From Perkinsus chesapeaki ATCC PRA-425 (taxonomy: Eukaryota > Protista > Perkinsozoa), in assembly GCA_013115145.1 (NCBI GenBank), contig JAAPAO010000001.1:268529-332528 (forward strand): DNA of 64,000 nt, in the 5' to 3' direction. The notes beneath the pieces are model-generated. The model was given only the letters and a program-made list of their open reading frames with translations. It did not search any database and had not been told where the DNA came from. Shown here piece by piece: positions 21,447 through 64,000 of this stretch. Positions within the stretch are counted from its first letter, which is position 1, and each line of letters opens with the position of its first letter. The position numbers and the translations under genes are program-made.

Positions 21447-21786
21447 TTGTTCCGATTTACCTCCGTGCACTCCAGCGACTGTTACCATTACTTTACGTTG
21501 TTGACTTGACTTAGTAAGATCTACATAGCATTAGTTATCATCCCAATACGATTGACTTCACTATTATCTAAATAGATAATTTGTTTCGTTGTGATTAACA
21601 ATTAAAAGCGAATCAGAACTCATCCAATACAGTCATACTAACAACTCAAAACCGGTTAAAGTAAAGATCTCAAAAAACGACACGTCCTTACGGCTATTTC
21701 ATGAGTTATATGAAAACACTCACAAGAATTTAGTTCATTGGTATGTTAGAAGAACATTCATTTAATCCATTACAGTGGTGGAGTTA

Positions 21787-25039: not shown

Positions 25040-25175
25040 CCTCTGAGCGAGTGCCACCCGGAGAAGGCGCAATGAAGAAACTGCGTCCGTCGCCTGACTG
25101 TATTGATCTGATGGAATCAGAATCGGACTATGATGGTGAAAGCTCCGATTCTGAAGCGACCAAGAATCGTCGACG
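25040..25175 (+). repeat. Third, partial copy of the 3' end of the PZP gene
   Basis: About 136 bp closely similar to 21292-21427 and the corresponding segment of copy 2 (encodes SERVPPGEGAMK..DLMESES.YDGESSDSEATKNRR). Confidence 0.85.
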
Positions 25176-30026: not shown

Positions 30027-31935
30027 AGGATACGACCACGTATGGGACTTGATCGATGAGGTTTACTCCGACCATCTGGTGAAGGTGCGCTGGTGCCGGC
30101 AACTGAGAGTGCGATGCCTACCTGCCTACCCGTTAGGGTCCCCTACGGAGCGGCATAAAGGAGATTAGGAACACATGGCGGAAGGTCGGTTTCAAAAGTA
30201 ACAGGCAGCGGAAACCTTCAAGGCGGCGAGGGCAGGGATCAAAGGAGGACAGCAACAGCACCACTACCAGTGGCAGCGCACTCGGCCATGGAAGCTCCAA
30301 ACCCTCCACGACGAGCACCAAGCGGAAGCGAGAATCTAAAGTGAAGGACCCTCAGGTGACCGTTCTTCCTTGCCATTCCGGGCTCGAAGTCCTCTCCCAG
30401 GAATTGCCTCTTGATGCCGCGGAATCACAGTCTGGTCTACATGCGAAGAACGTTGCCCTGTGGTGGTGCGATGGTTGCGGCTGGAACTCTGAGAAATCCT
30501 CTGATTCCCTAGAATGTGCATCATGCAAGGTGCAGGTACATAAACAATGTGCCGGTATCAACTGGGGTGAGCTCGTTAGTCCACCACGGTTTGATGCTTT
30601 ATTTCCCTTTAGGTACGGAAGGCCTCTGTCAACTGTGTGCGTCCGTGGCCAAGACGGAAGGGGCATCTCTGGACGATATGAAAAACTTCGGATTGGAGCT
30701 CGTCTCGGAGCGCAGCCCTTGCAAGATATGCAATCAGAAGTAGGCGAACTCCGAGTGGGCTGATGAAGATGATGGCGACTTTGCTCAGTTTCCTCGATTG
30801 CACAAGCGACTCTGGTGATGTTGTTCGAATCGGCCTGTATATGGTGGCTGCAGGTTGCCATTGGGCGCATGCTTCATGCAATAAATACTCCTCTCAAGAG
30901 CCCTCCTCGACATGCCAATTTGAAGACCTTTGTGGCGGCTTAGCCGGAGCATCAGTATGCTGTAAAGCTCCTCACTGCCAGATTGCTGTTCACGCCCTCT
31001 GCGCTGCCTTTCGGTTTCGGGTGACTCCCAGCGAGCCGAAGTTCACTTGTGACTCCCACCTTGCCGTTGGATCACCAAAGGCATCGTCGCTCGAGGAGAG
31101 TGAAGCCTCTCCTGATTCGAGCAACTCACGGTACCACCGCAACAAGATCCAGTTGATGGAGTCGCCGATCGCCAGTAGAAGGCGCCGACGGCGGCCCGAC
31201 TATGAGATGCCCAAACCTGCGGAGCCACCGAAGGTGCCGCTGTTCGAACCGGAAACCCGCCGAGAGGCAAGCTCGCCGTCACCGCCGCCCGGAGGGACGG
31301 CTGCTGCTGGCAACGAGCCAACACGAAAGAGTTTTCGAGGAAACAACATTGCGGATAAGATCGCCGCAGCCCTTCAGGATCCCGAAGACGCGCCGGAGGA
31401 GCGAACTCGATTGATGCAGGAAGCACGAGTTATAGAACAGAAGCTTCACGAGAGGGAACGGAAGGGAGGATACCTCAGCCTGGCCCGCCAGTTCATGAAG
31501 TTCCTGGCAAAACGTGATTCAGTGCCACGGATACAACTGAGAAGGCATGAAGTGGATGGCGCGTATGTCGGGATGTTGGAGCCTTGGCAATTGCAGAATG
31601 AAGAATCTTTGAAGGAGCGTGAACGGTTGGATGCCAAAAACAGAAGGATGGTTACTCTCGGGGATATCAACCGAGATGTGGATGACGACATCCCTTCACA
31701 TGACGTGGAGGCCACTACCGCCCCAACGGAAGGCCTTGCGATCGGACTCAACGGTTTGCCGGTAATGCCAGATCCATCGCCCTCTGAGCGAGTGCCGCCC
31801 GGAGAAGGTGCAATGAAGAACGACATACCGTCGCCTGACTATGTTGATCTGATGGAATCAGAATCGGAATATGATGGTGAAAGCTCCGATTCTGAAGCGA
31901 CCAAGAATCGTCGACGTGCATGGTGGGAGACTTGA
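30027..31935 (+). CDS. PZP (PHD/ePHD) gene copy 2, lacking the 5' part of copy 1
   Basis: Same exons and frames as copy 1 from GYD(H)VWDLIDE onward; the ATG and first exons are absent. A few substitutions, e.g. WAHALC to WAHASC. Confidence 0.65.
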
Positions 31936-32275
31936 TTGTTCCGATTTACCTCCGTGCACTCCAGCGACTGTTACCATTACTTTACGTTGTTGACTTGACT
32001 TAGTAAGATCTACATAGCATTAGTTATCATCCCAATACGATTGACTTCACTATTATCTAAATAGATAATTTGTTTCGTTGTGATTAACAATTAAAAGCGA
32101 ATCAGAACTCATCCAATACAGTCATACTAACAACTCAAAACCTGTTAAAGTAAAGATCTCAAAAAACGACACGTCTTTACGGCTATTTCATGAGTTATAT
32201 GAAAACACTCACAAGAATTTAGTTCATTGGTATGTTAGAAGAACATTTATTTAATCCATTACAGTGGTGGAGTTA

Positions 32276-33780
32276 CTAGAGTTGATCGTCAATCTTCTCA
32301 CCGTTCTCAAGCGCTTGCTCCAACTTCACCAATTTGGCGCATCCCTCAACCATAATATTGACCAACTGAACTTCGCTCTTACCAATCCTATCCTCGTTGG
32401 AGATATCGTAGATACCACCAACAGAGGCAGAGTCGACACCAGAACCACCACGAGCTTGAAGACCAAGCTTCTTGCAAATAGCCTTAAAGTCTGGTCTAGC
32501 AGAGAGTAGTGGAACCTTCATCATAGCTGAAGCACGGAGGCCAGTTCCCAAGTTACTCGGGCATGTGAGGATGAACCCGAGGTGGTCGTTGTGCATGAAG
32601 TCGTAGCCCTCGCTCTTCAAAACATCTTGTACACCATTGACGGCGATGCAGAATCGCTTGAAAATTCTCTTAATATCAGCACCCTTCTCCATGGAGATAA
32701 TTCTCATGTGATCTTCCTCATTGAGCCAGACGAGGAAATTCTTTTCGTCATTGTGGAAGATGCCGCGAGCATCAGGCCAGTGGCGACCCATTCCGCTGGA
32801 TAAAAGTAGAGTGGAATCAGGTTCTTGGAAAAGGAAGTGATTCTCTCTCATGTCTTCTTCCTGATCTTTCGACATTCCACCGGGCTTCGGCTCGTAACTC
32901 TGCGATCCATGAAGAGGGTAGTAGTCACCCTTGAGCTCCTCCTTAAGATTGAGGAGACCCTTTACAATAATGCGCTCGAGCTCACGCCTCTCCTCGAAGG
33001 TAACACTCGGGGGCAAACGAATGCCACGAACCGAGCGACCAGTGCGGACACGAGTGGAGATGACGTACCTGAAGATAGGTCAGATCCGACGAACTGCAGA
33101 CAAAAGCCAGACGGTCGCCTGACTTTCCAGTGGGATCGATGGGGGTGTCGGAGACCTTGGAGAAGTCAAGGTCGGTGGTATGCTTCGCGTCAGCAGGGAA
33201 ACCACCATGGCGACGATCAATTACAGGATCGAAACTGAAAAGGGAAGACATTAAGCCTCAAACGTCATATGAAACCTACAGATCCTTGAAAACTTCGTAG
33301 CTCTCTTCATCTCCAGCAACAAGGCCAACGGTCTTGATGGAAGGGTGCCCGGGGTTGTCAACGCCGGTCTTGAGGCATTTTCCAAGGTTAACACCTGAGA
33401 AGAGCGTTCATCTGGCACAGAGACACGACTGGTTACCATTCTTTGTAGTCTTCCCCTTCAGCTTCTCGTAGATTTCTGGTTTTTCGCACATCAGTTCTGC
33501 CATATAGCTGCTGTGTTTGGACAAATCAGGCAACTTCTCCGGGAGCTGAAGGGACAGAATGGAACGTGATAATAATTCTCCAAGGCACAGTGGAGCTATG
33601 GAACGTTAAAGGCGCAGTGGTAAGTGTCAATCAGTGATTGGTGAGAAGTCTTACATTGTCGGGATCGAAAGTTGCCTTCTTCTCCTCGCACATATACTCC
33701 TTGTCACCGAGGCCTAACTTGATCCACTCGGGGAGATGTTCAACGGTGGGGGCCAGTCCAGCGGGAGGGTAAGAAGCCAT
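32276..33780 (-). CDS. Creatine-kinase-type phosphagen kinase, copy 2
   Basis: Intact frame and splice sites. Differs from copy 1 by a few residues (PTG/PAG, DSRH/DRRH, FDE/FEE, WVN/WLN) and intron indels. Confidence 0.93.
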
Positions 33781-34175
33781 TGTCTGTAAGGGGAGAGAGG
33801 GTGCGAATAAAAACGCTGAGAAAGATCGTCGAGCACCCGGAATGACACGACCAATTATATACAAAGCAGACTCACGCGAGCGCAGCCGGTCTAAGAGTGA
33901 TGGAGGAGTAGGGGGGAGTTGGATACAAAAGAGACGATAAGCAGGGGCAATTGCGGTTGAGACGAGACTGTAACTTCATTTCTAATCGATTTGGGACGCC
34001 CTTTATTGGCGAGCCAACACACGACTGGGCGCGCGGGAACTTGCGCAAGTGGAATTGTGGACAGAGGCAGAGCACCAGGGTCGGATAGGATACTGTCTAG
34101 AGCAAACTGTAATGTTTACATAGCATTAATTAAACGCACGCGATCACACTTATGCATTGAAGGAACGGCTGAAAA

Positions 34176-34653: not shown

Positions 34654-35276
34654 GACGCCGGGACCGTTACAACAATCAGAATGAAGTCTGCTCAAGTTTC
34701 CAGCCTATAGCGTTACAGCGTAGAATTCACCGCCACTGTAGTACATCGGGAGTACAGGGTTGTCACCCCCGCATGTAGACAACTTTTCGTAATACACTAA
34801 GAAGTAATCATCCAATGTATAGCAGAAAGGATAGGACTACTCATGCAGACTCTGGTAAACAAATGAAACTCGGCCGCCGAGTCTCGGCGATTCCACGGAT
34901 AGCAACGTGACGTTGGGCTCTGATCAATGATGACTCAATAAACCTTACAGGCTCGGGGTGCCCAGGTACGGAATACTGCGAATTCTATCCAGATAGTGCA
35001 AAAAGAGATGATGCACGTCACCGTCACCAGCTGGTGATCAAGCTACTGCCGCGGATTCCCCAAATTGGGGACCCCAATACCGTATTGGCAATACGAACTA
35101 CACGCCCATTAATGGGAAATATTTTCGCTCGCCATCAGTTATTTCTGAAACGCTTTACGAAACGGCTTCCCAATAAGTTTCGTATTCACTCATGAAAATA
35201 ATCTGTCGTGGGGTAACAGTTCGGACCATCAGAATCTCGTGTCCTCCTCAGCTCGGTTATAAGCTTACTCAGTTAA

Positions 35277-35682
35277 ATGTCAATACTGACTGCCTTAGTT
35301 CTCGCTCTCGCTCTCATGAGCACTGCCGTGGGAAACCCGTACCCACGGTTTTCGCCGGCATGGTGGGCCTGGGAGCAAGAGTGTGGCCAGGGCCACGTGG
35401 TACCGAATGAGGGGTCCGGCGGGTGCTGGGAGGAAGGCATGACCTCAACCAGCCCCACTCCTCTACCCACCACCACACCACCGCCGGATGATATCGGCTC
35501 GGAGACAACTGAGAGAAATTTCCGAGCCCACAGAAGCAGTGGATCGAGGCCCATGTAAGTTTTGCTGAGGAAAATTCACTAAATTACTGTATAACTGTAT
35601 AAAGACTCTCTTGCTTTTGTTCAGGCTCGATCTAATTGGGTACTGTGGGTTGCTGACTTTGGCCCTCTACGGCGGTCTGTGA
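35277..35682 (+). CDS. Small secreted, predicted GPI-anchored protein; NPYPRFSPAWW family member 1 (111 aa, 2 exons)
   Basis: Signal peptide, NPYPRFSPAWWAWEQEC-x13-C, Thr/Pro-rich stalk, phase-2 intron 35555-35624, hydrophobic tail LDLIGYCGLLTLALYGGL*. Confidence 0.85.
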
Positions 35683-36925
35683 AGATAATCAGCTCATCAA
35701 AAGGTACGTTCGAGTGAGACTCGCTCGAGTCGTGACTACGTAGTTCGTACGTAGTGATTCACGACTCTTGAACTTCACGACTCGTGGATTCAGACACAAT
35801 TCAACAACGTGACTCTTCCTCAGTTACCTCGGACCCAGGCCTTATTTGATGAGCACCAGTGGTGGTAATGCCATCCCTAATTAATATGACTGAGACGGGT
35901 CCAATCGTACATTGCAGTGTTGTCATAAAGATATATCCACATTGTTGAGTTACGAGTTAAATTCCAAGGTTTTCGATAATATTTCATAACTCTCAAGTCG
36001 CGACTACATGGATTTCTACTAGTCAGCGTTAGAAAAGAAATGAGGCAAGCTTCAGAGTCTGACCATACCTCCAATTTAGAAAAGAGGAGTTGCACAGCGG
36101 AAGTTGCGCTTGTTAACCGCGCGCGCCCAGAAATGGGCCCCCAACGTAAAGTACGCGCACAGTTTGTCCACGTCCTACCACGGCGCCACAATTGCCCGTA
36201 CTACCATTCATAGGACTCTCCACCAAAGACTGTAAAGTAGTGTCTCTGACCGCTAGTAGGTGACACCCCACCAGGGTTTTACATCACTAGGTGTTAGTAA
36301 CACCGTGTTACCTACTGCGTGATACGAGATCCAGACTTCAGATGGACGGGGTAGGCGCGTGGGAGTGACATGCGTTTGTAGACTGACGGACAACCAAGGG
36401 ACATGGGCCTGAGCGAATTGAAGCTTAGCTCAAACCACAACGTGTGCAAGACTTAAACTTCAAGTTGAAATACCCGAGATGGAGATAATCCCCAGGGGAT
36501 TCCCCATCGGGGAAATTACTGAACGTTGAGTTACTAAAAAGCGAAGATGCACGATGAAGCCGTGTCAGGAGACCACTTCAATAGCGGAGGGACTCTCAAG
36601 CACAGCAGCAGACCAGCCGTAGCCACTGGCTACTAGCCAGAGGTATTGAATTTCCATTCACTAACAACCAAACACCAACGAAGAAAGAAAATGTCATGGA
36701 GCTCATGGCGAGTCAATTATACAAATGGTTTCAATGGCAGGCGCTGTGCTTGCGTCCGTTCAACAGCTGCCGTCGAAGGGACATCAAATGCAACATGACA
36801 TCATCGTATTCACAGCGTGACCGTAGAATAACAGATGCTGGAGATCCGGTCCTGTATGGCGTCAACGGCGTTGAGCCTCGGAAATTGAACCTACATGAAT
36901 CCAGCTCAGGAACGCGACTACCACC

Positions 36926-39900
36926 TCAGAGCGATTCGCACGCATTGGGAGTTGCACTTCGTTCCGGTGTACGTGGCGTTCCAGTCTCTCTATTTCCTGA
37001 CATGCTGCGGTAGCAAGATGTTGTGAATCCGCTGGACCGTGCGGGGATTCCAGTAGACGCCTAAAGTCGAGGACCATGACACCGTTTAATAAGGTACAAA
37101 CGACAGGAAACCATGCACAGGCCTGGCGTTGGGTTAAGAGCGAATAGCAGGTGCCAGAAGCAGCTCACCTGCTCCAGTCGCAGCTTTTCGCACCGTCGGT
37201 CAACTTCCCTTTTCCACTGCATATTGCGCTCATAAAATCGACTGGCCTCGGCAGCTGAATAAAGGACACCCCTCACTGTGGAATGTACGGAGTGTTCGAC
37301 GAGATGCTCGTTATCAGTCATTTCCTGAGAAGACAGGATGGGCGAATGTAAGCACTTATACTGGGACTATAGTGATGTAACTGAAGACGATCCACGTGGT
37401 AGGAGAGCTGCAGACTACAGCCTGTAGTATAACTCCATCATTCTGTCACACTGCAACTGTGAACCACAGTGTCACCCGCCGAAAGTTCTATCTTAAAACT
37501 TCAAGAGCCGAGACTTGAGAGCAATTCAAGTACTGTTATACTATAACTTACGAACCGTTATACATGAGGGTTATAGGCTATTGATAGTAATCGATTATCT
37601 ACTCTCTATATACCATCATTACTACAGGATAATCCAAAAGGGACCACCCACTGAGATATCATGCTGCGTGGAAGAATGTGTGTCTTATGGGCTCTAAACT
37701 CTCGCAGAGGTCTCCCTCATGCTTCACGAGCGGTTGATGAAATTCGGGCAACGCCCAGAAATATCTCAATGATCAATACGCCCATCAATCAATGAACAAT
37801 AGACTATACAGAAACGGATGCTGGCTAAATCCGGTTACATTCCACAGATTGCCCCCTTAGCATGCTGGACGAGCCCGAACGGGTTTGAGTGCTAAACCGG
37901 CTTCAAAAGGGGTCAATGATCCCACAGGTACCCCTGCCTGTCATGCTGTCACACAGTCTTACAGCACTGACATCTTTGAACGCATAACCCTGTAGATAAC
38001 TGAGTCGGATAAACCATTCAGAATCTAGAATACAGCAGCCTACAGCAGTTACCGCCCCCCTTCTAGTGAGAACAGCGAGTCGAATTGACCCTCGCTCACC
38101 TTAGCTAGATCCCGTCGTTGCCTCGCCCATTCCAGTGTCCTCTCTCTCTCCACTTTCCAGGCTTTTGTCCGCTGATACATACTATCCAGATTACGAGGTA
38201 CACTACTCGACCTAGTAGTTGCTTTTCGTGGTGATAAACGAGGTGAGAAGGTGCACTAACACACTACCATCAAACACACACTTGAAAAAAATTACCTCTC
38301 GCATCTCCTCAGCTGCTTTCAGAGACCTTGCCTGAACCACCTTTTCTTCTTGTAGTCTACAACGCTCGCGAGCTCTAGAGTATATGTCACTGCCTCGGGA
38401 TGGAGCGGTGCGGGGAGTTGATAACTGGTTAACTTCTGGGGTTGCTGTTGAGCTCCGAGGAGTTACGGGTGGGGCAGCGAGAGCTCTCTGAGACGCACGC
38501 CTGATAACGAGCATAGAACACAAGCTTAAGATTCCCAGTGACAGTAGTGTACTTCATCTCACGCGAGTGTATGGCAGAGTATGAGCCCATACATTTCCGC
38601 CCATGAAAATCCCTAGAAGAATGCTCAATATCTTGCCGGGTCTCATGCACACTAGGCTCACTAGTTCTCCGGTGCCGACCTGAAAACGAGCGAAAGATCA
38701 CGTTAAGGGGACAATTTCTCCGGAACTGAGCCTCACTCATCTTTGTTTTATCGGTAGGAGCTAGCGCAGTTTCGGGCACAGTTGGATGGCGAGTTGCTGT
38801 CTTCCCCAGCGACAAACGCTTTGCAACAGGCTTGATTCCACGCAAACTCTGTTTGGCCTTGGCCGCATTTTGCATTTCAACTCGCAAGCCGGGCTCATCG
38901 TCCCTAGGCGGATCCTCCTCCGTTGTTGTATGGGAGCTCTTCGCTTCATTAAGCGTAACATTCACTCCCTCATCTGGCAACATACTCGCTACTGGTTCAT
39001 GTGCTGCAGTCTGGGCCAACGGCGAATCTCGGTACCGCTGCCCTGCTTCGGGCGTTCGGTATCCTGAGCTAGCCTCTGTACCGTGGAGGTTAGAATACGT
39101 CAAGGCCCTAGGCTCAGAAGCTATATCCATCGAGCTTTCACTCGGCTTTGAATGACTATCGTCCCTCCGAAACGGGCCCTGTCGACGTGGTGTTAGCAAC
39201 GCTTTGACAGTCTTAGGGTGGGTGTCCTTCGCCGCCCTCGGGAAACGGCCATCATGATGATCATCGATGATGGCATCATTGATATGTCGACTAGTTTTTC
39301 CCTTTTCTTCCCGCATGCAGTGCCCTGCAAGGCGTTGCTTATCAAACTCAGTTCTTGTTCTAGGAACTGTTCGCCTCAAAGCTATATCAGAATCCTTGCT
39401 TGACAGCCTTCTGACCTATAGGATAAACTGTTACTGTAGTAACAGGGGGTACTACAGTAAGAGATAAAGAGCCTGCTTCAGACTGTCGAGCCTTCGATCG
39501 ACTGCTCCCGTGATTTTCTCCCCATGCGGCTTGGCCTTTTCCCGCAACCCTCAGCCTGGCTATCTGCTGCATTTTTCTGTACCGATCTTCTTTCGAAGTT
39601 TCATCTGGTAGCTCGGATATTGTCCCTCGCGAGTTAGGTTGAGCCTCGACGACCTGGCGACGTTACACATCGGTTACACCACCAGAAGTACCGGTCGGGA
39701 ACAGTTTTATAATCACAAAGAGACCTGCCTGCCGTTCGCGCCGAGTCACAGTAAGTTATTGTCAATAACGTAAAATAGGGATTCAATACTTGCGACTTGA
39801 AGACTTCAAGTTGAAGTCTAATGCCTCCCTCATCACCTTAGGATCGGTTGACTCCGAGCGAAACTCTTCCGAAGGGCGTTCGGAGAGCGAACACCGATTG

Positions 39901-40185
39901 CCACTCCCTACGCTGAAATCACCAATACCAAATTTTTCACTTTTGAGTCCCGGCAGCGAACGATCGCCTGAGGTATCCAGCCAACAATCAACCGATGACA
40001 AAGTCCTGGGTACCAGATATGGTGGATGGCGAAAGATCGCTTATTATCGTTCGTTGTATCCGTTCTTGGGCTGCACTAACCCTGCTTTGAAGCTCAATGG
40101 ATTCCCAGTTCGATAGGTCGGTCACCACATCGGGTGACAGACACCCCACGGGAATCTCAGAGGGTGAGCTTCCCGATTCGGTCAT
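36926..40185 (-). CDS. Uncharacterised low-complexity / coiled-coil protein (multi-exon)
   Basis: Minus-strand ORFs 39988-40185, 39783-40001, 39387-39572, 38429-39379, 38212-38523 and 37061-37321 can be linked by GT-AG introns. Repeated helical [FIM]YxR..W-like segments. The 3' end is approximate. Confidence 0.5.
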
Positions 40186-40735
40186 AAAATATATTATACA
40201 AGCAATTAATCAACTGAGAAACGCGTTTATTAACCGCATGTACATACGAAACCAAATACATCTTTGGTCCCTGCCAGGCAGTGCCCAAGCCAGCCAGGTT
40301 TAACGTGAATGAGATGACCTCATCATTAGGCGACCAACGGCTGGTAATACTCAGCCAATAGCACAGTACTACCTGCCCCTATCCTATCACCCTGCTATCC
40401 TATTAGACTGTTATCCCTTTCATCGGAACATCCCCACCGTAAAAGCGTTCCTGTTGACAGCAAAGAACGAACTCAAAACAGACAGAAAACGAGAAATAAT
40501 CATTAACATTTTGATCCATGATCACAGTGTGAGTCGAGATACGCTGAGAGCGCATAACAAAACTCGCTCGCCCGAAATCGATCGTCCGCGACCGACAACA
40601 TGTGAACCGTTGTATGCATCACTAGGATAATGTCGCAAGTTGGTCACAACGAGAAATCGGACTCGACCTGTCATTTACAATTGCATAAACACTAAGGGAA
40701 CTTAAAGTTTCAGTTCGTTTTACTAATTATCACCA

Positions 40736-41131
40736 ATGCCGTCTTATATGGTCCTCATCGTCATCGCTTTCCTCTCCGCCGTGGGAGTTGCTGGGGAGAA
40801 CCCGTATCCTAGGTTCTCTCCAGCGTGGTGGTCTTGGGAGGCTGAGTGCAACCCGGATTACTCGGTCGGTAATGAGACTTTTCCCCATGTGGAAAACAGC
40901 AATCGGCCACCTCACCTCCCTTGGAAGCCACTTCACAACCCTGGGAGGATGGCTCGGATGTTACTACTACATGGAAACTCCGAGCCAGCGACAAAAGCGA
41001 TGCCAAAATGACGTAAGTACATTGTCGATAAATATTGATTTGTATAGTCTGGAATGCTATTTGTTTTCTTCAGGTATTCAGCTCTCGGCTCATGGGGATT
41101 GCTCACGGTGATGGCGGTGAATATTCTGTGA
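40736..41131 (+). pseudogene. NPYPRFSPAWW family member 2, with a single-nucleotide frameshift (pseudogene, sequence error or recoding)
   Basis: Signal peptide + ENPYPRFSPAWWSWEAEC. Adding one T to the TTTT at 40879-40882 gives a 111-aa protein colinear with member 1, with the same phase-2 intron (41013-41073) and the same 58-nt last exon ending GLLTVMAVNIL*. Confidence 0.8.
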
Positions 41132-41776
41132 GCGACAGTGATGACCACGTAGGTGGGTGAGCCAGTAACAACATTCAACACACCCACGATTCATGTCCTC
41201 TCAGGTGGTCTGCAAGTGCGAGAAGTACCATTTTCTAATTCGTTGGATAAACCTGCAAAGCAGTTACTTTCATAGTGATTTGCGTTCATAGTTCTCGGGG
41301 GTCCCTACGCAATTACACTTGGCATGAATTGCACAAGGTACTTGGCGTAGTAGTTCCGTGCTGTAGAATGGCTCTACATGGTCTACGAGACTCGATAATC
41401 GACTAGTACCGAGTTGCAACATTTGTTCGTTATTCTCATAGGCCACCCTTTATCACCCGCTCCCGCCAGGCCATAAGGCTCCTAGTGAACACCATTGGTA
41501 GCATAGGCTTCTAGTGAATGCATGTATCCTTAGTCGGTTACCAGCCGAGTCTCCAATGTCTGGCGTATTCATCTAACTCTTAACCACGAATCGCAGAGAC
41601 ATTTAGAAAAACTACCGCACGACCGTCAAGGCTGTTCACTGCATTACCTAGTTCCTATTCCCAGCCTGCCTGTAAGAGAGTTAACACAACATCTGGCCGT
41701 TCCTATGAAACCACCTAGTCATTAACGTTTTCTAATAGTCCCAAAGCACCATCAACCCTTTAACGGGATAGAACGG

Positions 41777-44700
41777 CTACAACACGCGGTTGCGAATATC
41801 CTCCAATTTCTTCATGACCTCCTGCGGAGTCTTGTCCATATCGACAGCGATCTGGCGTTGCTTTTCGGCAGGCAGCTCATAATATCTGATCACAGCCACA
41901 CGTTAGGACAGTTCAAGCGCACAGTTGGTCCTAAAACCAGCTGGACACCTAACTGTGCAGAATACCCTCTCATTGGTATCCGTATACTTTCTAGAAATTA
42001 CCCCCATCGTGCTCACACGCCCACTTACACTTCACATAGATCGGCATCGATGAAGTTTTTGACAGGATGGTAGAAGGAGCGGTACATAACGTGTTCGCGC
42101 CCTGTTAGACTCGGAGAAGCTGCAGTATTCCGCATATGCATCTCAAGTGCCTAGCATGAACAGTCCACACTACAGAGCAAAGCCGAGTTTTCGGCGGCTA
42201 CCTGCAGGAAGGTGTGCTCTCGCTTCGAAGAGAAGGGATACAGTGCCCCGATAGTTCCGAGAACCGTAGAATATATGATGATTTCAGCGCCACCCGCTAC
42301 CATTGTCACCTGAAATAGTTACAGTAGTGGAAGCTCATAGCTATAACGATCCATTACTCTTTGAAGCGAAGTTACCGTCTCTCCAACGTGGAAGTGGCCG
42401 ATCAAATCCATCTGAAGGAACAACCAATGATTTCCGCCAATGGAAGCTGGTGAATGCAGATCGACTAGGCGCAGGGTACCGAAAGGATCGATCATAAATA
42501 TACACCTTACTTTAAATGTATTGCCGGATACATAGTCATTATCACGACCAGGAACCAATCTCAATGTAGATATGCCTTCAGCCTCAACGACAGGACTGAA
42601 AGTCGGTAGACTGTGAAAACGAAGATGAAGTATACTACAACGTACCGTCCCCAAGCACCAGCGTCCTTGGCATCTGAAGGTACTCGCAGGATGGCGAGGT
42701 TGTCAAACTTATCCCCAACAACTATGGTCTGCGGGCAAGAAGAAATAGCGCATCACTAGAGACGGTAACATCGAACTCACGTTGTAATCAAGTACAGCCG
42801 CGGCTGTGATGCACCTCGGATAGGTATCATCCGAGATAACCTACAAGACAGCAGCCAGGTCACAGTCCCATGAGTTGTAACGGCAAGACTTACCTGCATC
42901 TGATTGTCGCTGTACCTCCATCTCAAAACCATAATACTATCCCTACTATCAGCGGCAAAGATGCGATCCTTGTTCACATCGAGCCACATAATTCCACCGG
43001 ACTCCGGTAAGAACTTATACTCACATTTTTTCAGCAGCCGCTTTTTGCCCAATTCGTAGATCCTGAACCCACACGCAAATCCATGCGCAATGTCTATGGT
43101 AGAGTCCTTACCGTAGAACGGGTGCCACCGTTGGAGACCCGCGCAGGGCAACCAGTAACCGTCCTTCGAAGGGATACATTGCAGAAGGGACGCCTAAGCA
43201 GAGGCGTGCATAGCTGCAGTCGAGAAGCGAGCCTCGTGGACTTACCTTCTAGCGGAGTTACGTGAATGAGCTGTAGGTTGTAGCTCTCATCGTAAAGATA
43301 CGTCTTGATGTAGCACTTGCCATGGGCCGATCTCGAGGGATTATGTGGATCGACACCAGTAGCAGTACCAACTACGAGACACGGGCGGTTATCCTGACAT
43401 TCGCAATGTCGCCATATAATAAGCCTAGGGAATCACCTTGAGCTGGTAGAAATAACAGACAGTCATAGCAGTGGCTGCCTCATCAACATCAAGGTCCAGC
43501 TTGAAAGAGGTAGATGCTGTCAGAGGGTCTACCACTCGGATACAGGAGCCCCATTTCCCATGCCCAGCGATATAGGTTCCCACCTAACGACCAGATAATG
43601 CCAAGATGAGGTGCTTGGCTCTTACTTGGCTCTCTGGTGGAGGATCCATGTCGGTATCATCGTCCTCTCCAGCATCAACCTTGATCTTCCTCAAGGCTTC
43701 CCTAATCTCCGCCTTAGTCTCTTCGTTATAACTGCGATTATAATCCTTACGGTTGAATGGCATATATAGGCCCTACGCATTGTGATCAGACTCCATAACA
43801 GCAAGCATGATCCTGTTGTCCATAGGAACCGCATCAGTCTGTCCAGATAACAGCTTTGGTGGAGGAAGAGGCAAGAACTTCCTTCCAGTGTAGGAAAGAG
43901 GCACCATAACCTGACGAAAGGTGAACGTCACGATGAGGAGTAGACCACAGCCTCACCTGATTAAAGGTCTCATTCAGCCTTTCCACACTGACAATCCTAA
44001 GAACTCGCTGGCTGGTAGTACATATGCCTTCCTGACAGTTCTCAATGCTGAAGGGGGCGGCCAGATCGAACCTCGGCAAAGCCGGGATCTTGCTGCTGCC
44101 GGGTGTGTCTTCATCCTCAGCAGCGGCGAACCTACCATATCCGAAAGTAACATACACCGTTAATGTTGAAGAATCTTACGTTAAAGGAACACACTGATAC
44201 TGACCACCAGAAGCTCCAGCAGCTGAGTAGTCGTTGGCTTGGAAGCACAGGAAAGGTCGTGCGCTCATCGCCACCATTGCTGGGCGCCCACCGTCGACAG
44301 TAAGAGGGCACAAAGTAACCTGAAAGAATATTCCAACATCAGCTGGAGTGCTGAGTGGGATAACTTACCCGTCGTGGTCCCAGCACACGCTGTCTCTGAT
44401 CCGATAGCTGCCCTGTGACACCATCGATGACCGACCGCACCAGTACACCATCCTCGAGACCGATCGCCAAGTAGAGCGTGGAAGTTGTTCCCTGGCCGAA
44501 CTGCAACATGCAGACAGATGAAGCCGTGGTCCTAAGGGCCTGTGCTGCTAGCTGCCTTAATGGACGATCAGAGTCCAAGGAAAGAACACGGACAGATGAG
44601 TCCACACCGGCCACAGCCATGAACTGACTTCGAGTTCGACCAGATGGAAGAGGTTGCACGCAGAGGGCAGCAACCTCGCAGCCAATATCACGCTTGGCCA

Positions 44701-46827
44701 CCTCACTGAGATGACCATTGGTATCAGCATCAAGTTCGAACAGCTGTATTTCACCACCAGATAAAGCAATCACCACTTGAGAGCCATTGCTGGCAGCCAT
44801 CGTGACCTGCCTTCCAGGCGGCGCTCGCCACTCAGTAGTTCTACGACCGGCTGCAACGTGACGGATACCACTTGGCATAACCTAACAATAAAGTCCCACG
44901 GTGATGCAGGTTGACCGTAATTGATCACGAGGCTTACCTGTATAGCACTCTTATCTTCCATCCTCATGGCAAAGAGTGTCGGCTGATCCTTAGCGAATCC
45001 TGAGTCCGTAACTTCATGAATGTTATCAGAGGTTACCAATAAGGTCAGAGTTTGATCCACGAATGACACCACGATGTACCGATCGGACTCGACCTCACCC
45101 TCGGACACCGGCGCATAACTAGCACCGAAGGGCTTAATCGTGAACAACGCGTTTGGTTGGCCTGGCAGTTCTGAAGCCCCAGCTTCCCCAAGTGTTAAAC
45201 CATGTCGTAGGATCCTCAGGGCAGACCTTGGGCCTCGACCAGACAAGGCGTATATCTGGCATCCAGCCGACATACCAGTTGTAACCGTCTGCTGCATCCC
45301 GCTTCCATCTTGCTGCATAACCTGCGTCTGTGTACTAAAGCAGTCCATAACCTTCATATCTGTGATAGGAGCCAAGCTGCTAAGCTCGTCAAACGGAGTG
45401 AGGTTCTTGAGATTCCGAGGTTTAAAGGCCACAACAGCGTTCTCTCTATTAGGGTGTGAAGAAGTGACAATTGCTGGACTCTCATCACCAAGGCTCGCAA
45501 ACTGGTATAAAGCGTGGTTGCCGAACTCCGATGCCGCAAAGAGGAAACCGGTCTTCAGGACGCATATGGAAATGGCCACGGGTATAGAGTCGAAGTAACT
45601 AACATTAAGAAATTGAAGTCCGGTACAGGATGCTGAGAACTTACCTGCATTGAATCTCAGATACTACTCCCTCCTTATGGCTAAGGGTCACCTTGTAAAG
45701 GTCACCGTACTCAGACTGTATGAGGAAGAAGAAGAAGTTCTTCAGCTTATGTCGACTCCAGCAGACCACCATCAGACCTTTTTCAGCTGGAGTATCCAAA
45801 CGTCTTGGCATGGCACATGACAGTACTGGATGTCCCTGAAGCCAGCCATCCCTCTCGAGCCACCATAAACACCCTACCTGCTTATAATATGAGAGGAAGT
45901 TCTCGCAGCAAAGTAGAACACCGCCAGGACCATCGGTGCCACCTGGAACTGGTATCAGGTCGTGTGCCGAGAAGGGTATCTTGTCGCTGTGCTTTCTAGT
46001 GACCTACCCCCAAGAAAAGTGTCCGTATGCTAAGACATGTACACCTTACATGATTAACGCCGAGGTCCATCTCATACATTGTCAGGAGCTTCTGCGGATT
46101 TGGTCCCTTCTTACCAAAGTCATCGTACCTGCATGGCAATAGGTTAATGGTCCCCGCCCTAGAGATGCAACACTTACTGGCACTCGATTGCGGCGTACTG
46201 GGGGTTATCGAAACCGACATCTAGCCCAACCGTTGCGAAAGCAATGGTGTAGCTTTTATGGGCCTCCAATGGGGATGAAATCGTGAGTCTCGATTGGAGA
46301 TCTCTGTTGAGAATATAGACGAATTTTTGTCGTTCCACGGCGGAGACCATACAACTACGCCCCTTAGGATCAACCGCCAGATACTGACCAGGCACGGTAC
46401 GTCGGCAACCCCTAAGAAACCCTTATAGGAGTCGCCCTAATCCAGCCAACTTACGTCTTTCCATAAGTCTCTTGATGAACCTTATCAAATACGTTCTTGG
46501 TTGTGTTGTATTCGAGGATCACAATTCGCCCAGAATCCGAGCCAACGAGCAGATAGTCTCTGTTGGCACCGACCAGTCGGAATGTCTCTAGCGAGCGTAT
46601 CAAGCCAAAACAATTCACCGATATAACCGTCTGAAGTCTATTTTGCTCATCTGGGCGGAGCAGCTCCAGAGTCGACCCTAAACTGTCAACTGAAGATCGA
46701 GACTAACGGACGAAACACTACCTCTGGCCACAACGATCTCCTGGGCCTTGGGTGCCGAGAAGTTACCGTAGACCGCACACGCGACGGCCGAGGTCTTCGA
46801 CAAGGTCAAGTTATAGAAGTGAGGCAT
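41777..46827 (-). CDS. SF3B3: Splicing factor 3B subunit 3 (SAP130/Rse1), multi-exon
   Basis: N-terminus [36 protein letters not shown]; internal [47 protein letters not shown]; C-terminus [18 protein letters not shown]. Confidence 0.97.
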
Positions 46828-46993
46828 TTCCTAGGATGCCAACAATAGCAGCCACCCCTACTGAAAATACTATTGCAGGCGATAGTCGAATAAAGAAACA
46901 CATAACATAGGAAACAAACGTGAGAAGACGCCATGATTAGAAACATCATCACTTGAAAAAATGGCTTGGCAGACTCATAGTGCCGCTAGTCAC

Positions 46994-48508
46994 CTAAACG
47001 CAGGAATCGGCCGAAGCCGGAACAGTCACCAATGTGATTACGAGACTGCAGCCTCCGCTTATACTGACATTATCATCGCCGTCTTCAACTACCAACTGTC
47101 CGCCTCGAGCAGATAGCATTACACACTTCAGGGGCCTGATTAAGTTCTGTGCCCCGTAGGGAAATGATAAATAAATTTAGACAAGGTAAGCCCCCTACTA
47201 CCCTTTAACCCCAATAGATGTCATATACGGGCCTATAACAGTGTGGCTGCTACCGTTAACAGGATCCTCTGGAATGCCATTCCATGGGGCAAAGTACCTG
47301 CTGTCACCACGGTGCAGGTTGAATTCTCTCTAGTATGTCTTACCGTGAATATACAACAGCTCCAGCCCCGCTGCCCGCATTGCTACTCTGCCAGCACATT
47401 ACGCTGACCCCTCTGATAACATCATCACCATGCGAACCGAGTAGCGCAGTGTTGTCCTAACATACCAGTCGCGAGTCAATACAGGCCGATCGTTAGCTGA
47501 GTCGGCGACTAGTAACAGCCAAGTAGGAATATATCAGCGCTGGGAGCCACATGTATATTGTACATGCAAGTTGGCTTACGGCCTTCACTTTAAAGGCGCA
47601 TAGCAGTCTACAGCCAAACAGAGATCGCTAGCATACAGGACCCACAGGTGAAAGACGCTTTATAGTATCTTCCCCTTCTTCCTTGCGACATACAACCAGC
47701 AGTTTCTTCGCCTGATGTGATACAGCTACGTCTTCCACCTGCCAAAGATCCAAAGTTGCCAGATCTTTTACCACACGGCATCACTTCCTCCTGTCTCAAC
47801 CCGAGGGCCTTAATGATTCGCTGAGTCCACTCCGGAAGCTGGGCACTCGAGAAGCGTTCCTCGGGTGGGTTTCGTGGGAATCCCAGAGTGTACGACTTCA
47901 TAGGGTCTTCTTTCTCCCCGGCCCCTTCACGCCCTACTACCTACAAAGGCATACTACATAGATCTGCGACAATCAATGCTGGACCAACTAAATCTCCTGA
48001 CGTAGTTTCAAAAACATATGCCTCAGGCACGTGTTGATTTGTGGCCGGTAGTAGGGCCTGAAAAATTCACCCTGAGTAGCATTCAGTGCGGAGTAGCCAC
48101 ATTACATCCAGGCATCTGGCTGTTGCAAGCGTGGCATGTCCACACAATGGCACTTCATTCCTGACAGGAAGACAGTGAGATAGTACATACGCATCTACGA
48201 AGAGCACTACGTTGGAGTGAACCATCGAAGACCATATCTCCCGACGGCCTCGTCAATTCTGCTAACGAATGCCGTCTCCGAATGACGTAACTCGGCCGCT
48301 ATAGCTTGGCACGCCTGCCACACCCAAAGGAGCTCACCAAGCTCGATTCCTCCATCACTACCTCTTCCTTCAGCGTCTTTCCCTTTGGCACCACAACTAC
48401 ACCTGCAGGATTGCCTGTAAAACGAATCTCAAGGCCGGCAGGCGCTGGATCAACAAAAGCGTCGGCAACATAGGCTGGCAGAGGAACCACTACGTGCTTA
48501 TTAGTCAT
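46994..48508 (-). CDS. PhzF/PBLD-like (phenazine biosynthesis-like, DAP-epimerase fold) protein, multi-exon
   Basis: ADAF..FTGNPAGV, SETAF, LRWFTP, EVPLCGHATLA, SRYFAPWNGIPEDPVNGSSH and SARGG motifs across spliced exons. Confidence 0.88.
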
Positions 48509-48683
48509 ACTTTTAAGAGAGAGTAGCGCTATGTAATCAATTATCCGTACTATAACGCACGTCAAGTGGAACAGGATCAAATACACAACTAACCAAGTTA
48601 CATGAACATTTCACATCAATTCGCTTGCGGAGACAGGATCTTCATCTGAGGAGGCGGCGTATTCTAGATGTAATACTTCATTA

Positions 48684-49472
48684 CTAACCTTCAGCTTCGC
48701 CTACAGGTGGAGATGACGACGGCATTTGAGTTCCTAGCAGCTCGTCCATTAAAGCGGTCAACCTCTTCAAGTCTAGGGTCTTCAATTCTTGTGCGATGCG
48801 ACTTCTTCGACTTTGAATCGACCGTGCCCCTGAAAGATCATCCCAAAGCCAGCGTCTGCTAAACCGAGACCTACGGAATAACAAGGTTAAGGCGAGTCCT
48901 GCAATGAGGACCAGGGCGGAGAGCCTTAGCTGATGATTAAGGGTTCTCTTGTTATTACTAGCGCGTTGCATAAACTGGCTTGACCTGCCTAAGCTCGGGA
49001 ACGGTGGCTCGACTGTCGTTGTAGTATCCACTTCAATCGATTCCGACCACCAGTGTCTAGGGGATACCACGAGCTGCGCTAAACCACTGAATGTGACCTC
49101 ATCGTCACCGTCTTCGTCTGGTCCGGGTGCGGTTAGAATTATCCAAGCAATTGCAACAACAGCCATGAGGATGACCGCAGCACCGATTTGAACCAGAGCC
49201 AAGCGACTAGCCATTCTTCTCAGTTTGTCATCGCAATCCGGAGGGATAAAATACTTGCTCCGACACCGCGGGCAATGACTTGTAAGAGTCCTCCTCAAGA
49301 ACCCCTCAACGCACTGTCGATGAACCAATCCGGCATCCTCCGACTTTTTATGACAGTTACATATGCAAATGAGCAGATCCGGGAGCTCGTCACTCCCACA
49401 CTGTGCGCAGGAAAGAGCCCGATTTGAGTGATCAGGCAACGACGTTGAATCGCTACACCGTCGGCCAGTCAT
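48684..49472 (-). CDS. RING-CH (RINGv/MARCH-like) membrane protein, probable E3 ligase
   Basis: C4HC3 spacing CAQC..CNC..HRQC..CPRC, followed by two hydrophobic segments (LALVQIGAAVILMAVVAIAWIIL; LSALVLIAGLALTLLF). Confidence 0.75.
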   Translation of the reverse strand: MTGRRCSDSTSLPDHSNRALSCAQCGSDELPDLLICICNCHKKSEDAGLVHRQCVEGFLRRTLTSHCPRCRSKYFIPPDCDDKLRRMASRLALVQIGAAVILMAVVAIAWIILTAPGPDEDGDDEVTFSGLAQLVVSPRHWWSESIEVDTTTTVEPPFPSLGRSSQFMQRASNNKRTLNHQLRLSALVLIAGLALTLLFRRSRFSRRWLWDDLSGARSIQSRRSRIAQELKTLDLKRLTALMDELLGTQMPSSSPPVGEAEG

Positions 49473-49926
49473 AAGTTCTCAAAACGTTTCAGGTGAAGAT
49501 CAGGCGGAAACGATTGTTAACGCGCGCTAACTTTTTACACGACCGGATTTTTTTTCACAGCGTATGAGAGCTCGGAGCAGACGTTGCAGCTCTTGAGCTG
49601 AGCTCGCGGAGCCTTGTGTGGCCATGGTGGCATGCATATTGCGGAATGACAGCGACACTACCGTGACACGGTAACGATCCTCCGAACTAGTACTAATACG
49701 GGACATACAGGTCATCGTGTCCCCACTTCCCGGAATCGACGGGCAAAACTCGCTCGCCCAGCCGAGTCTTGAAACGGCCAGCCGTTTCTAAATTGACGCG
49801 CTCTGTTAAAACGGTTAACCATAGTTGGTTCTTTGGACGTAGGAGTTTGCAATGCTGTAATTCTTTACGAAACTTTTTGCTATTACTTCGGTGATTCTGA
49901 CTTTTAGGGTTATTATAAATCTATAA

Positions 49927-50319
49927 ATGATATTCCGTTTGGTACTACTCCTTTCTACGATGCAGACGAGTGCTATATGCAGCCAGAACCCATTTCCACA
50001 GTTCTCACCTGCTTGGTGGCAGTGGCTGGCTAAAAACTGCCCTGAATGGTCGCTTGGAGGTGACCAATCCTCGTCTACTCTCTGCGATATCGAATGGCCA
50101 ACGCCACCGTCTAGCGATGATACTAATGACCTGGCTATTGCTACACCATCTGCGACTGACCTGGTTACAGATTCGGAATTCACTACTGACTTGGCCACAA
50201 CAACCACTAAACCGGGCCTGAGAGGAGAGCGTAGCATGTGCGCCAGCTCGCAAACTGGCGTAGCATCGTATTTGGCCCTTATGGTGGCAGTTCATCTATC
50301 CGCTGCCCTGTTTCTGTAA
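49927..50319 (+). CDS. NPYPRFSPAWW family member 3 (130 aa, apparently intronless)
   Basis: Signal peptide, QNPFPQFSPAWWQWLAKNC-x14-C, Thr/Asp-rich stalk, GLRG, hydrophobic tail YLALMVAVHLSAALFL*. Confidence 0.85.
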   Translation: MIFRLVLLLSTMQTSAICSQNPFPQFSPAWWQWLAKNCPEWSLGGDQSSSTLCDIEWPTPPSSDDTNDLAIATPSATDLVTDSEFTTDLATTTTKPGLRGERSMCASSQTGVASYLALMVAVHLSAALFL

Positions 50320-50835
50320 CATAGTTGACTATTACAATTAATTTATAAGATGGAAAAACATGCAATGCTGTTTTTGACTGATTAAACATGTTATTGAGTT
50401 ATATATTTATAATATGATTCTGGTATCGAGGTAATACCGCCCTTATCGTGTACTTGGAGGTGGCGCATTGGCTGCGCGCTACGGTGAGACACTGTGTCCC
50501 TAATGGGGATACAAACAGCATATATTCCTAAGGACCTATGGAGAACAGTTCTAGTGGAGCCGCTCCTGTAAGTCCAATGATGGGACCAAGTCCAATTATT
50601 GGACCAGGTCCAATGGACTTTTTTTGGACTCCAATAAACAGGCAACCAAACCTCGCAACCACATCTGCATACGTACGCACGCATGCGCAATCATGTGTCA
50701 CTGTCTCCTCAGGGGAATTACTCTGCGCTGCCCGCAAAGAAATATGCTTGCCGAAGGCAAGCATTTTCTTGCGCGCGTCAACTTTTTTCTTGCACTGGGC
50801 AACTTTTTTCTCGCGCGCCACAAAACTTTCCCTAG

Positions 50836-51217
50836 CCCTGCAGGCAACTGAGCTGTGGGTCTACAGGTGTCAGACCCACCTGTGAGTGGCGATGGCCGAC
50901 CTACAGGGAAGTGGGGGTGAGGTAGCGGCTCAATTCGGGCTTGCGCGTGTCCTGCGGGACCCGGATTAACTCCCTCTCCCTGCAAGCAACTGAGCTGTGA
51001 GGCTAGAGGTGTCAGACCGAACTGTGTGTGGCGATGGCCGACCTAGAGGGAAGTGGGGGTTGAGGTAGAGGTTCGATTCGGGCTTGGGCATGTCCTTAGC
51101 GATTACGGATTAGCTTGCAGTTCAGTCCGAGAGTGGAGCTGTCTAGATTCCGCCTATGACTTCTCTTGTTCTGGTCTGTGCGGAGGGGTGACTCTGTGAG
51201 GCTAGAGGTGTCAGACC
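50836..51217 (+). repeat. Diverged ~142-bp tandem repeat (two full copies + one partial)
   Basis: Units start CCCTGCA(G/A)GCAACTGAGCTGTG at 50836 and 50978; a partial third copy lies at 51194-51217. Preceded by three ~21-nt TTTTCT(T/C)GC..-type units at 50764-50820. Confidence 0.85.
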
Positions 51218-51780
51218 TCTGCTACTATCAGTTGACATGGAAGTTCCATGATGGAACAACATTCATTTCACATCAAGCGCTCGCCGTTTTTGAAAGTAAC
51301 TCGAACTCTGACGAGCAAGGTTCATTATGATCAAACGACATATCCATTGTTAACATGCAGTGTCTACGGTCATTCCTCGCGCGGTAATTATTCTTTCCTC
51401 TGTGTACAATCTGAGTAATTTTATGGTTGATTCTGACGCCTTGTAGACCGCCTTATTCTCAGTGGGCCTTTAGTTGTCTTTATGGATAGTTGGTACTTTA
51501 ATGACGAGACTCGTCCATCGTGAGAATCACATATCGTCTTGCTAGGTTAGCAACCTGAGGTTACCTCTGGTAAGTGCTGACAGGGATTCCAGGTGGATCG
51601 TCCACGATGGACCCTATCGTGCTCGAAAACTACCAGTATACAAGCGGGCTAGTGGAAGAAGGGAAACGGTGTATAGCGAGTGAAACCTTCGCAGTTTCGG
51701 AATCATTTCCATAGCGCATAATCGTATGCACGCATGAGTTATCAAGTCTCGATTTCCAGCGTTCTCAGTACGATTTCTCT

Positions 51781-63008: not shown

Positions 63009-64000
63009 GCGCATGTTGCGCAGCGCAACGGCGTCCAACGAAATCCAAGGTTCTACGGTTGAATGATTCAACCTGAATCATATTCAACAAACGATACGTG
63101 GGATCCTCATAATGGGGACTTACATACTAATTAGGTTGCTTACCAATTGGAGCATTGGATGACCTGAATCTTGGTTATCAATTTGGTTTGAAATGGTTAT
63201 TAACTTAATAACCACTTCCACGGCTCATAGTGCTGATACATCCTTCGTCGACTCCGGAAACGATATCGTCGACTGTGTCATTCATGGCCTAACTCCATGG
63301 AAGTTCCATGATGGAACGGTGAGTTGGATGTGGTTGTAACATTGAATGGTGTTCAGGTGTGATCCGGACGAACGCCGCATGAATTATTCCATTTAACGCA
63401 TAGTGCGTGAAGCGTTAGATCCTTGTTCAGTTTCGTGTAGGGTTTATGAGTTAATAGTTACTCATAACTGCAGCAGTTAATTTGCTTCTGCTTACTCGTT
63501 ACTGCTTTGCAGACGTTGACCCACGGCGAGAACCCATTCCCGAGATTCTCGTCGGCATGGTGGGAATTGGAAGAAAACTGTCTATTTCTACATTCAAATA
63601 ATAGACTCAATTAGGAGACACTGCCCTAGCCAGCACAGCTTACTGGAAGATGCAACGGTGCACCGTTGCAGCAACGGACTTCATATCTTCACATTCGGAC
63701 TTCGTAGTTCGGTGCGGCACCGACGGTGCCCACTGGAAAGAGCACTGTGCACTTGCAAGGAATGGACATTTCAGTTTATATGCAGTCATGTTCTTCGCGA
63801 GGAATTCACCTTGGGATTCGATAATGACTCCCAGGCGGTCAGAAGGTACGGACTGCAGCCTGCACAGTGCAGTGCAGGCCAAAGACGTTTCTAGCACCTG
63901 AATTTCTAGGGGGTTTGCGTAGAATCTGGGGGGGGGTGGCAAAGGCCCCCTTTTTTACTCAGCCTTATCGTGGCGCACCCTTTTCTTACATGCACGCAAG

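Follow-up and report, generated by a model that had tools for sequence, protein, structure and literature searches.

A Perkinsus-restricted family of small, predicted surface proteins with a conserved Trp-rich head and a common upstream 9-mer

Introduction

Perkinsus species are major disease agents of oysters and clams, and to our knowledge almost nothing is known about their surface proteins and gene control. The terminal 64 kb of contig JAAPAO010000001.1 (332,528 nt) of the clam parasite Perkinsus chesapeaki, analysed here over the full length of 64,000 nucleotides and referred to as the window, contain three small genes on the plus strand (genes 1, 2 and 3) that are scattered one by one among housekeeping genes and encode short proteins with a shared Trp-rich motif, the head, close to the N-terminus. 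These genes raise the question of what kind of protein carries such a head, how far the family extends and whether its dispersed members are controlled together. A model that saw only the letters of the window had proposed an unrecognised family of three secreted or glycosylphosphatidylinositol (GPI)-anchored proteins (the sequence-only reading). The follow-up analysis points, on balance, to a Perkinsus-restricted and co-regulated family of GPI-type mucin-like surface proteins as the probable answer.

Results

The head is conserved by selection in three dispersed genes

Translation of the loci confirmed that genes 1, 2 and 3 start at 35277, 40736 and 49927 on the plus strand, where the sequence-only reading had placed them, and all three are annotated as genes in assembly GCA_013115145.1. 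Their common layout comprises a hydrophobic N-terminus, the head (G/E/Q)NP[YF]P[RQ]FSPAWWxW, a Cys, a Ser/Thr/Pro-rich stretch, [FL]R[AG] and a hydrophobic end. Gene 1 (303805-304210 of the contig) consists of 35277-35554 and 35625-35682 of the window; its translation equals the annotated 111-aa protein P0001 and is identical to the NCBI hypothetical protein FOL47_000089. The architecture described for all three genes was recovered in full for genes 1 and 3 and only in part for gene 2, whose ATG frame lacks the second Cys, LRA and the tail. The introns of genes 1 and 2 (35555-35624 and 41013-41073) are, as had been noticed, both in phase 2 and each precedes a last exon of 58 nt. The coordinates of these features are collected in Table 1.

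Table 1. Features of the family loci in the window.
Feature	Position	Strand	Basis or remark
9-mer TCGCTCGCC of gene 1, 152 nt 5' of ATG	35125..35133	+	exact match
Gene 1 (FOL47_000089) exon 1: putative signal peptide, NPYPRFSPAWWAW head, C-x13-C, Ser/Thr/Pro stalk, FRA, putative small-residue omega region	35277..35554	+	P0001, AF2
Gene 1 intron, 70 nt, GT..AG, phase 2	35555..35624	+	both exon translations match P0001
Gene 1 last exon, 58 nt: hydrophobic C-terminal tail, stop	35625..35682	+	P0001; AF2 helix 92-109
9-mer TCGCTCGCC of gene 2, 172 nt 5' of ATG	40564..40572	+	exact match
Gene 2 (FOL47_000091) first reading frame: putative signal peptide, ENPYPRFSPAWWSW head, first Cys	40736..40882	+	translation
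Gene 2 frame-break zone, T4C4 run; assembly indel or real frameshift	40876..40887	+	two-frame reading
Gene 2 second reading frame: second Cys, Ser/Thr/Pro stretch, TTTWKLRAS, omega-like region	40876..41012	+	agrees with A5 family pattern
Gene 2 intron, 61 nt, GT..AG, phase 2 relative to second frame	41013..41073	+	
Gene 2 last exon, 58 nt: hydrophobic tail like that of gene 1 (G.LLT core)	41074..41131	+	
9-mer TCGCTCGCC of gene 3, 177 nt 5' of ATG	49750..49758	+	exact match
Gene 3, without intron, 130 aa (P0002): putative signal peptide, QNPFPQFSPAWWQW head, C-x14-C, Thr-rich stalk, LRG, hydrophobic tail	49927..50319	+	single ORF, annotated gene in GCA_013115145.1
Decayed fourth copy: hydrophobic stretch and ENPFPRFSSAWWELEENC, then stop	63468..63614	+	without ATG, stalk, tail, upstream 9-mer
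AF2, AlphaFold2; ORF, open reading frame.

A degenerate DNA pattern of the motif matched genes 1-3 with 0 mismatches and a fourth site at 63531-63563 with 1 mismatch. These 4 sites in the window compare with 0 in 100 shuffles, and a chance origin of the motif sites is excluded. Over the 11 head codons from N to WW, genes 1 and 2 differ by 7 synonymous and 0 non-synonymous changes, and the other gene pairs by 4-5 synonymous and 2 non-synonymous changes. Because the divergence between the heads of genes 1 and 2 is synonymous-only, it is concluded that the head is under purifying selection, which bears out the proposal of a strongly selected motif in otherwise divergent proteins. In the seven-row family alignment A5, the residues N, P, P, S, W and W of the head are invariant. 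On average, pairs of members are 59% identical over the 17 residues of the head, 21% beyond it and 18% in the putative signal peptide.

The family is restricted to Perkinsus among the proteins searched

An exhaustive profile search with a hidden Markov model (HMM), which covered 1.84 billion representative proteins, returned seven true family proteins, all from Perkinsus and all named hypothetical. These were the three window proteins, P. chesapeaki P0014 (FOL47_000216, contig JAAPAO010001015.1) and the P. olseni proteins P0012, P0015 and P0016, with P0017 and P0018 in the same 90% cluster as P0012. Among the proteins searched the family is thus restricted to Perkinsus, and no P. marinus protein was found among the matches of the protein searches. 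Word-index protein searches, for which gene 1 exon 1 and a four-row alignment served as queries, returned the window proteins only; this absence was misleading, as the HMM search added four further Perkinsus clusters. Three long HMM matches from outside Perkinsus, to a tick protein of 2967 aa, a Limnohabitans VCBS protein and a protein from a metagenome, were discarded as artefacts, because their scores sum many repeats of ~2.8 bits, none of them with WW.

None of the 7 members matched a Pfam family at E<=10, the best match of a profile search against the PDB (E=0.16 over 18 residues) was not meaningful, and the motif strings, the member accessions and the upstream 9-mer described below were not found in the literature searched. 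The family is indeed unrecognised. Its size had been underestimated: instead of three members, P. chesapeaki has at least five loci, including the decayed one, and P. olseni has two.

The P. chesapeaki locus outside the window (L007) has an uninterrupted ORF at 433-729 that encodes a complete member, comprising a putative signal peptide, the head ENPFPKFSSAWWSWEEE, a stalk, LRG and the hydrophobic tail; the annotated splice of P0014 is probably wrong. This member has no Cys pair. The proposed Cys spacing of 13-14 residues was confirmed for gene 1 (13) and gene 3 (14). The contig of L007 was also considered as a haplotig and is not an allele of the window end. At the P. olseni locus L008 an uninterrupted ORF (10001-10438) encodes a member of 145 aa, in which a variant head, NPYPLLSELWWGWEQEC, is followed by C-x13-C, LRA and the tail. 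P. olseni P0018 contains a 131-nt phase-2 intron directly before a 61-nt tail exon, in the same place and phase as genes 1 and 2, so that a phase-2 intron before the tail is conserved across the two species (gene 1, gene 2 and P0018).

Predicted architecture of the family proteins

The N-termini reach 9-residue Kyte-Doolittle means of up to 2.7-3.5, and by manual rules small residues occupy positions -3/-1 before the head. In every member the head starts directly at, or 1-5 residues past, the likely signal cleavage site. It is therefore not strictly the mature N-terminus that had been proposed: in P0018 five residues lie between the likely cleavage site and the motif. Nor is the head displayed on a disulfide loop, since it precedes the Cys loop, which is dispensable in one member. 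The AlphaFold2 (AF2) model of P0001, calculated from the four-row alignment, shows a helix at residues 2-16 (signal), a helix at 27-36 over SPAWWAWEQE (block predicted local distance difference test (pLDDT) ~79), disorder at 52-91 and a helix at 92-109. A Ser/Thr/Pro-rich stretch is present in all members, and the pLDDT of P0001 falls below 50 for residues 52-91.

The position of the head might be explained in another way, namely as an invariant sorting or processing motif or a Trp C-mannosylation site that the parasite itself reads within its secretory pathway; the remainder of the protein would then be variable cargo or coat. Such a role would be consistent with a head placed so close to the likely cleavage site in every member while all else diverges, and with the W-x-x-W, which is retained in all six intact members and lost solely in the decayed fourth copy. 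The first Trp of WWxW also satisfies the acceptor rule for C-mannosylation, W-x-x-W/C (PMC8433626), and DPY19 C-mannosylation operates in the related apicomplexan Plasmodium (PMC9338275). However, Pfam gave no match to TSP_1, the thrombospondin type 1 repeat (TSR), or to any other family, and the conserved head block is far longer than a four-residue acceptor site. The head is furthermore unlike PEXEL or RxLR, to which the sequence-only reading had alternatively compared it, and the core of these motifs (RxLxE/Q/D or RxLR, ~15-40 residues after the signal peptide) is not in the head consensus NP[YF]PxFSxxWWxWE. A function of the head purely as an intracellular signal is considered unlikely.

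At the other end of the protein, TT-x(3-5)-[LF]R[AG] was found in every full-length member. In all six of these, small residues follow 3-8 positions past [LF]R[AG], and after a spacer of 4-10 residues the protein ends in a hydrophobic segment of 12-18 residues, with no residues beyond it. The small-residue runs near the putative omega site are, by inspection, SSG, SDA, CAS, SAG, NGA or SSA. The three features that define a GPI signal as a class, a terminal hydrophobic segment, a spacer and small omega/omega+2 residues, were found by inspection in the six full-length members. Together with the signal-like helix, the small -3/-1 residues and the disordered stalk, this layout fits a secreted or GPI-type protein, in agreement with what had been predicted. 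The [FL]R[AG] lies directly upstream of the putative omega site and might take part in shedding or in the addition of the anchor.

The C-terminal segment, which is predicted as a helix, could also be a transmembrane anchor, or be missing in some copies, and the proteins would then be embedded in the membrane by a single C-terminal pass or fully secreted instead of GPI-anchored. Tail-less products are indeed given by the frame-0 reading of gene 2 and by the annotated P0003, P0014 and P0015. These annotated models, however, disregard ORFs that restore the family C-terminus. Moreover, nothing follows the hydrophobic segment, which measures only 12-18 residues and comes after a spacer and small residues in six of six full-length members, the classical layout of a GPI signal. 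Proteins of this non-GPI type are distinctly improbable, and a GPI-type anchor is preferred in the following.

A 9-mer precedes the intact family genes

With both strands of the window counted, the 9-mer TCGCTCGCC occurs exactly 3 times, compared with 0.35 copies expected and a maximum of 2 in 100 shuffles, and all 3 copies sit 5' of family genes (Table 1). Genes 2 and 3 have in addition the 15-mer AAAACTCGCTCGCCC in common (40559-40573 at gene 2). Outside the window, the L007 gene has the 9-mer at -175, P0018 has four tandem copies between -199 and -121, and the L008 gene has one copy at -161 (+) and one at -199 (-). The 131.5 kb of non-redundant DNA of both species contained 11 copies, 10 of which fall within the 200 nt 5' of the ATGs of the six intact genes, at distances of 121-199 nt. 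The 9-mer was not found in the P. olseni loci L004 and L005 described below, nor, even with one mismatch, at the relic fourth copy. In four of the six genes GAAACG(G) is located 20-35 nt downstream of the 9-mer. These results show that a conserved upstream element is common to the family genes, and TCGCTCGCC is a candidate family-associated cis-regulatory element.

The copies 5' of P0018 (L006, P. olseni JABANP010000090.1, 9802-9888) lie inside about four tandem units of ~29 nt (TCGCTCGCCCCGCC.GAGCATCTT.CCTT), which indicates that the element was amplified in P. olseni.

Gene 2 is frame-broken and a fourth copy has decayed

The ATG frame of gene 2 stays open until a stop at 41009-41011. The family-like continuation starts at 40876 in a different frame, with PC, the Ser/Thr/Pro stretch and TTTWKLRAS, followed by the 61-nt phase-2 intron and the last exon. 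As the family features of gene 2 are split over two frames, the gene model of the sequence-only reading requires a one-base frame change in the T4C4 run at 40876-40887; it is regarded as the ancestral structure. The analysis treated the two pieces of gene 2 separately. The public model P0003 instead uses a long splice into a third frame, by which every family feature beyond the first Cys is lost. This splice sidesteps the frame break and is unconvincing.

Two further explanations of the break were rejected. A 35-nt intron at 40865-40899 would mend the frame but delete the second Cys, and is unsupported. Perkinsus mitochondrial genes decode frameshifts at CCCCT (PMC9550989), and gene 2 is broken in a TTTTCCCCA run; that mechanism, however, was described for genes encoded in the mitochondrion, whereas the contig of gene 2 is nuclear. 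In UniRef, P0003 (FOL47_000091, window 40736-41275, 92 aa) is labelled 'Alpha-carbonic anhydrase domain-containing protein'. No Pfam family matched P0003 at E<=1, and the name looks mis-propagated.

The fourth site belongs to a copy that, without ATG, stalk, tail and upstream element, looks like a relic.

Members differ between collinear P. chesapeaki and P. olseni loci

The neighbouring ubiquitin-conjugating-enzyme (E2) gene P0004 and its P. olseni orthologue P0005 (62% identity) were used as synteny anchor, by which the P. olseni loci L004 and L005 were both reached. In tblastn comparisons the 700-aa gene and the RSE1/CPSF_A, PhzF, E2 and Dpy-30/Myb genes are strictly collinear between the species. 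The interval that contains gene 2 measures 1.57 kb in P. chesapeaki versus 378 nt in P. olseni, and that of gene 3 2.3 kb versus 284 nt. Neither L004 nor L005 has the motif or the 9-mer, and no trace of gene 2 or gene 3 was found in their syntenic gaps. These two genes therefore either arose in the lineage of P. chesapeaki or disappeared from that of P. olseni. P0018 is located on the contig of L005 between the 700-aa orthologue and an arginine-kinase-type gene, which is the gene 1 interval, in an orientation relative to its neighbours opposite to that of gene 1. Members of the family have thus been gained or lost between the species.

No similarity of flanking DNA was found between the copies beyond the 9-mer and the motif. 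They are therefore old paralogues and not recent duplicates, and a recent transposon-borne duplication was ruled out on the same ground. That the loci are non-functional leftovers moved by duplication, and not expressed genes, is highly improbable: the frame break of gene 2, the decay of the fourth copy, the absence of genes 2 and 3 from the P. olseni syntenic sites and a sequencing-run search without RNA support would fit such leftovers, but the head diverges by synonymous changes only, five ORFs are still intact, the copies are old, and the place and phase of the intron and the upstream element are kept across two species whose flanking orthologue is 62% identical.

The collinear region also contains a questionable gene model. 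At 41777-49472 (minus strand) the annotated 1829-aa P. chesapeaki product joins a PhzF domain to an RSE1/CPSF_A beta-propeller protein. P. olseni annotates PhzF (541 aa) and RSE1 (1284 aa) as two genes, and the 1829-aa model is therefore probably a false fusion. The RSE1 model of a second P. olseni assembly, 1586 aa long, apparently takes in part of the next gene. Downstream of the P. olseni E2 gene, an annotated small 154-aa ORF (L005 13205-14014) has a hydrophobic N-terminus and neither a Pfam match nor the family motif; no window counterpart was noted for it.

Other features of the window

Two stretches, 19537-23528 and 30027-34003, form a tandem duplication whose period is ~10.49 kb and whose copies are 88-100% identical. 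An arginine-kinase-type gene lies within it, with ATP-gua_Ptrans catalytic ORFs on the minus strand at 21787-22527 and 32276-33016, as does an ORF of 364/390 aa; an 89-nt piece of the duplication has a third copy at 25087. A palindrome-rich string of 22 nt, CCATGGAAGTTCCATGATGGAAC, is identical at two unrelated places (51236-51257 and 63296-63317). In the intergenic DNA downstream of gene 3, two direct repeats of 90 nt (50829-51060), 142 nt apart, are 89% identical.

Discussion

The features of the family can be combined into one explanation. The product would be a secretory protein of ~100-145 aa with a cleavable signal peptide, a Trp-rich head (NP[YF]PxFSxxWWxWE) that is predicted to form a short helix, and usually one disulfide loop. 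A disordered Ser/Thr/Pro stalk, probably O-glycosylated, would lead to the conserved TT-x(3-5)-[LF]R[AG], the small-residue run and the terminal hydrophobic segment. Because the C-terminus is laid out in the manner of a GPI-attachment signal, a mucin-like coat protein with a GPI anchor is most likely, and such a protein would hold the invariant head away from the parasite surface. The head could bind a conserved partner, as the ligand or adhesin suggested by the sequence-only reading would, or it could be a signal read within the secretory pathway. Since the same TCGCTCGCC is present ~120-200 nt before each ATG, the genes are probably co-activated, and one DNA-binding factor would switch all of them on together via this element. 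Secretion, anchoring, glycosylation, co-regulation and a binding or modification role of the head are all suggested by sequence layout and conservation.

Several observations weigh against this explanation. The signal peptide and the omega site were assigned by manual rules, and the overall confidence of the AF2 model is low (mean pLDDT 59). The eleventh copy of TCGCTCGCC (L006 12540) lies 281 nt 5' of a non-family gene, the P. olseni kinase gene adjoining P0018, so the element may not belong to the family alone. As assembled, gene 2 has a broken frame, and the fourth copy has decayed, which means that not every copy need be functional. Finally, transcript support was not found in two tiny sequencing runs of the same species, which gave no read on the stretch.

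Small GPI-type mucins of protist parasites are a familiar kind of protein; the family itself is, in the databases and literature searched, without detectable relatives outside Perkinsus, without a curated family and without a publication. Mammalian CD24 and CD52, trypanosome mucins and procyclins resemble the predicted Perkinsus proteins in being tiny precursors with a signal peptide, a short disordered Ser/Thr/Pro-rich body and a C-terminal GPI-type signal; for the Perkinsus proteins the signal peptide, the disorder and the GPI-type signal are predictions. A CD24 cluster was among the nearest in an ESM-Atlas feature search, with a score (0.82) below the tool's level of meaning. None of these mucins is homologous in sequence to the Perkinsus family, and they lack its conserved Trp-rich N-terminal head and its usual disulfide loop.

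The head recalls the WxxW ladder of TSRs in its clustered W-x-x-W Trp, followed by acidic residues and Cys, in a predicted secretory protein of an alveolate. In contrast to TSRs, the Perkinsus members show no TSP_1 match (Pfam, E<=10), have at most two Cys in the head region, one pair or none, versus the six-Cys TSR fold, and their head block spans ~17 residues versus ~50. PEXEL, TEXEL and RxLR are likewise short conserved motifs soon after the signal peptide of otherwise divergent small secreted parasite proteins. The Perkinsus head is unrelated to them in sequence and lacks the RxL core, and exported effectors are soluble, whereas the Perkinsus members have a membrane-anchor-type C-terminus. 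Judged by these sequence features, the family is neither a TSR domain nor a PEXEL/RxLR motif.

A more far-reaching and tentative idea is that TCGCTCGCC and the Trp-rich head together mark a Perkinsus-specific regulon, in which one transcription factor would control dispersed, stage-specific coat genes and the head would either carry C-mannose or be bound by one conserved partner, for example a lectin or hemocyte receptor of the host or a component of the parasite wall.

Species diagnostics, antibodies and host-recognition studies could build on this family, which is genus-restricted, probably exposed at the surface and invariant at its tip. The upstream 9-mer is a first, directly testable candidate promoter element for Perkinsus; transfection and CRISPR are established in P. 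marinus (PMC8062965). Members that occur in one species and are missing from the other at sites that are otherwise collinear illustrate the turnover of small orphan genes between related parasites. If the regulon exists, Perkinsus would have its first promoter element and its first defined coat family, and new coat genes with their own promoters would have been seeded or lost among housekeeping genes since P. chesapeaki and P. olseni split.

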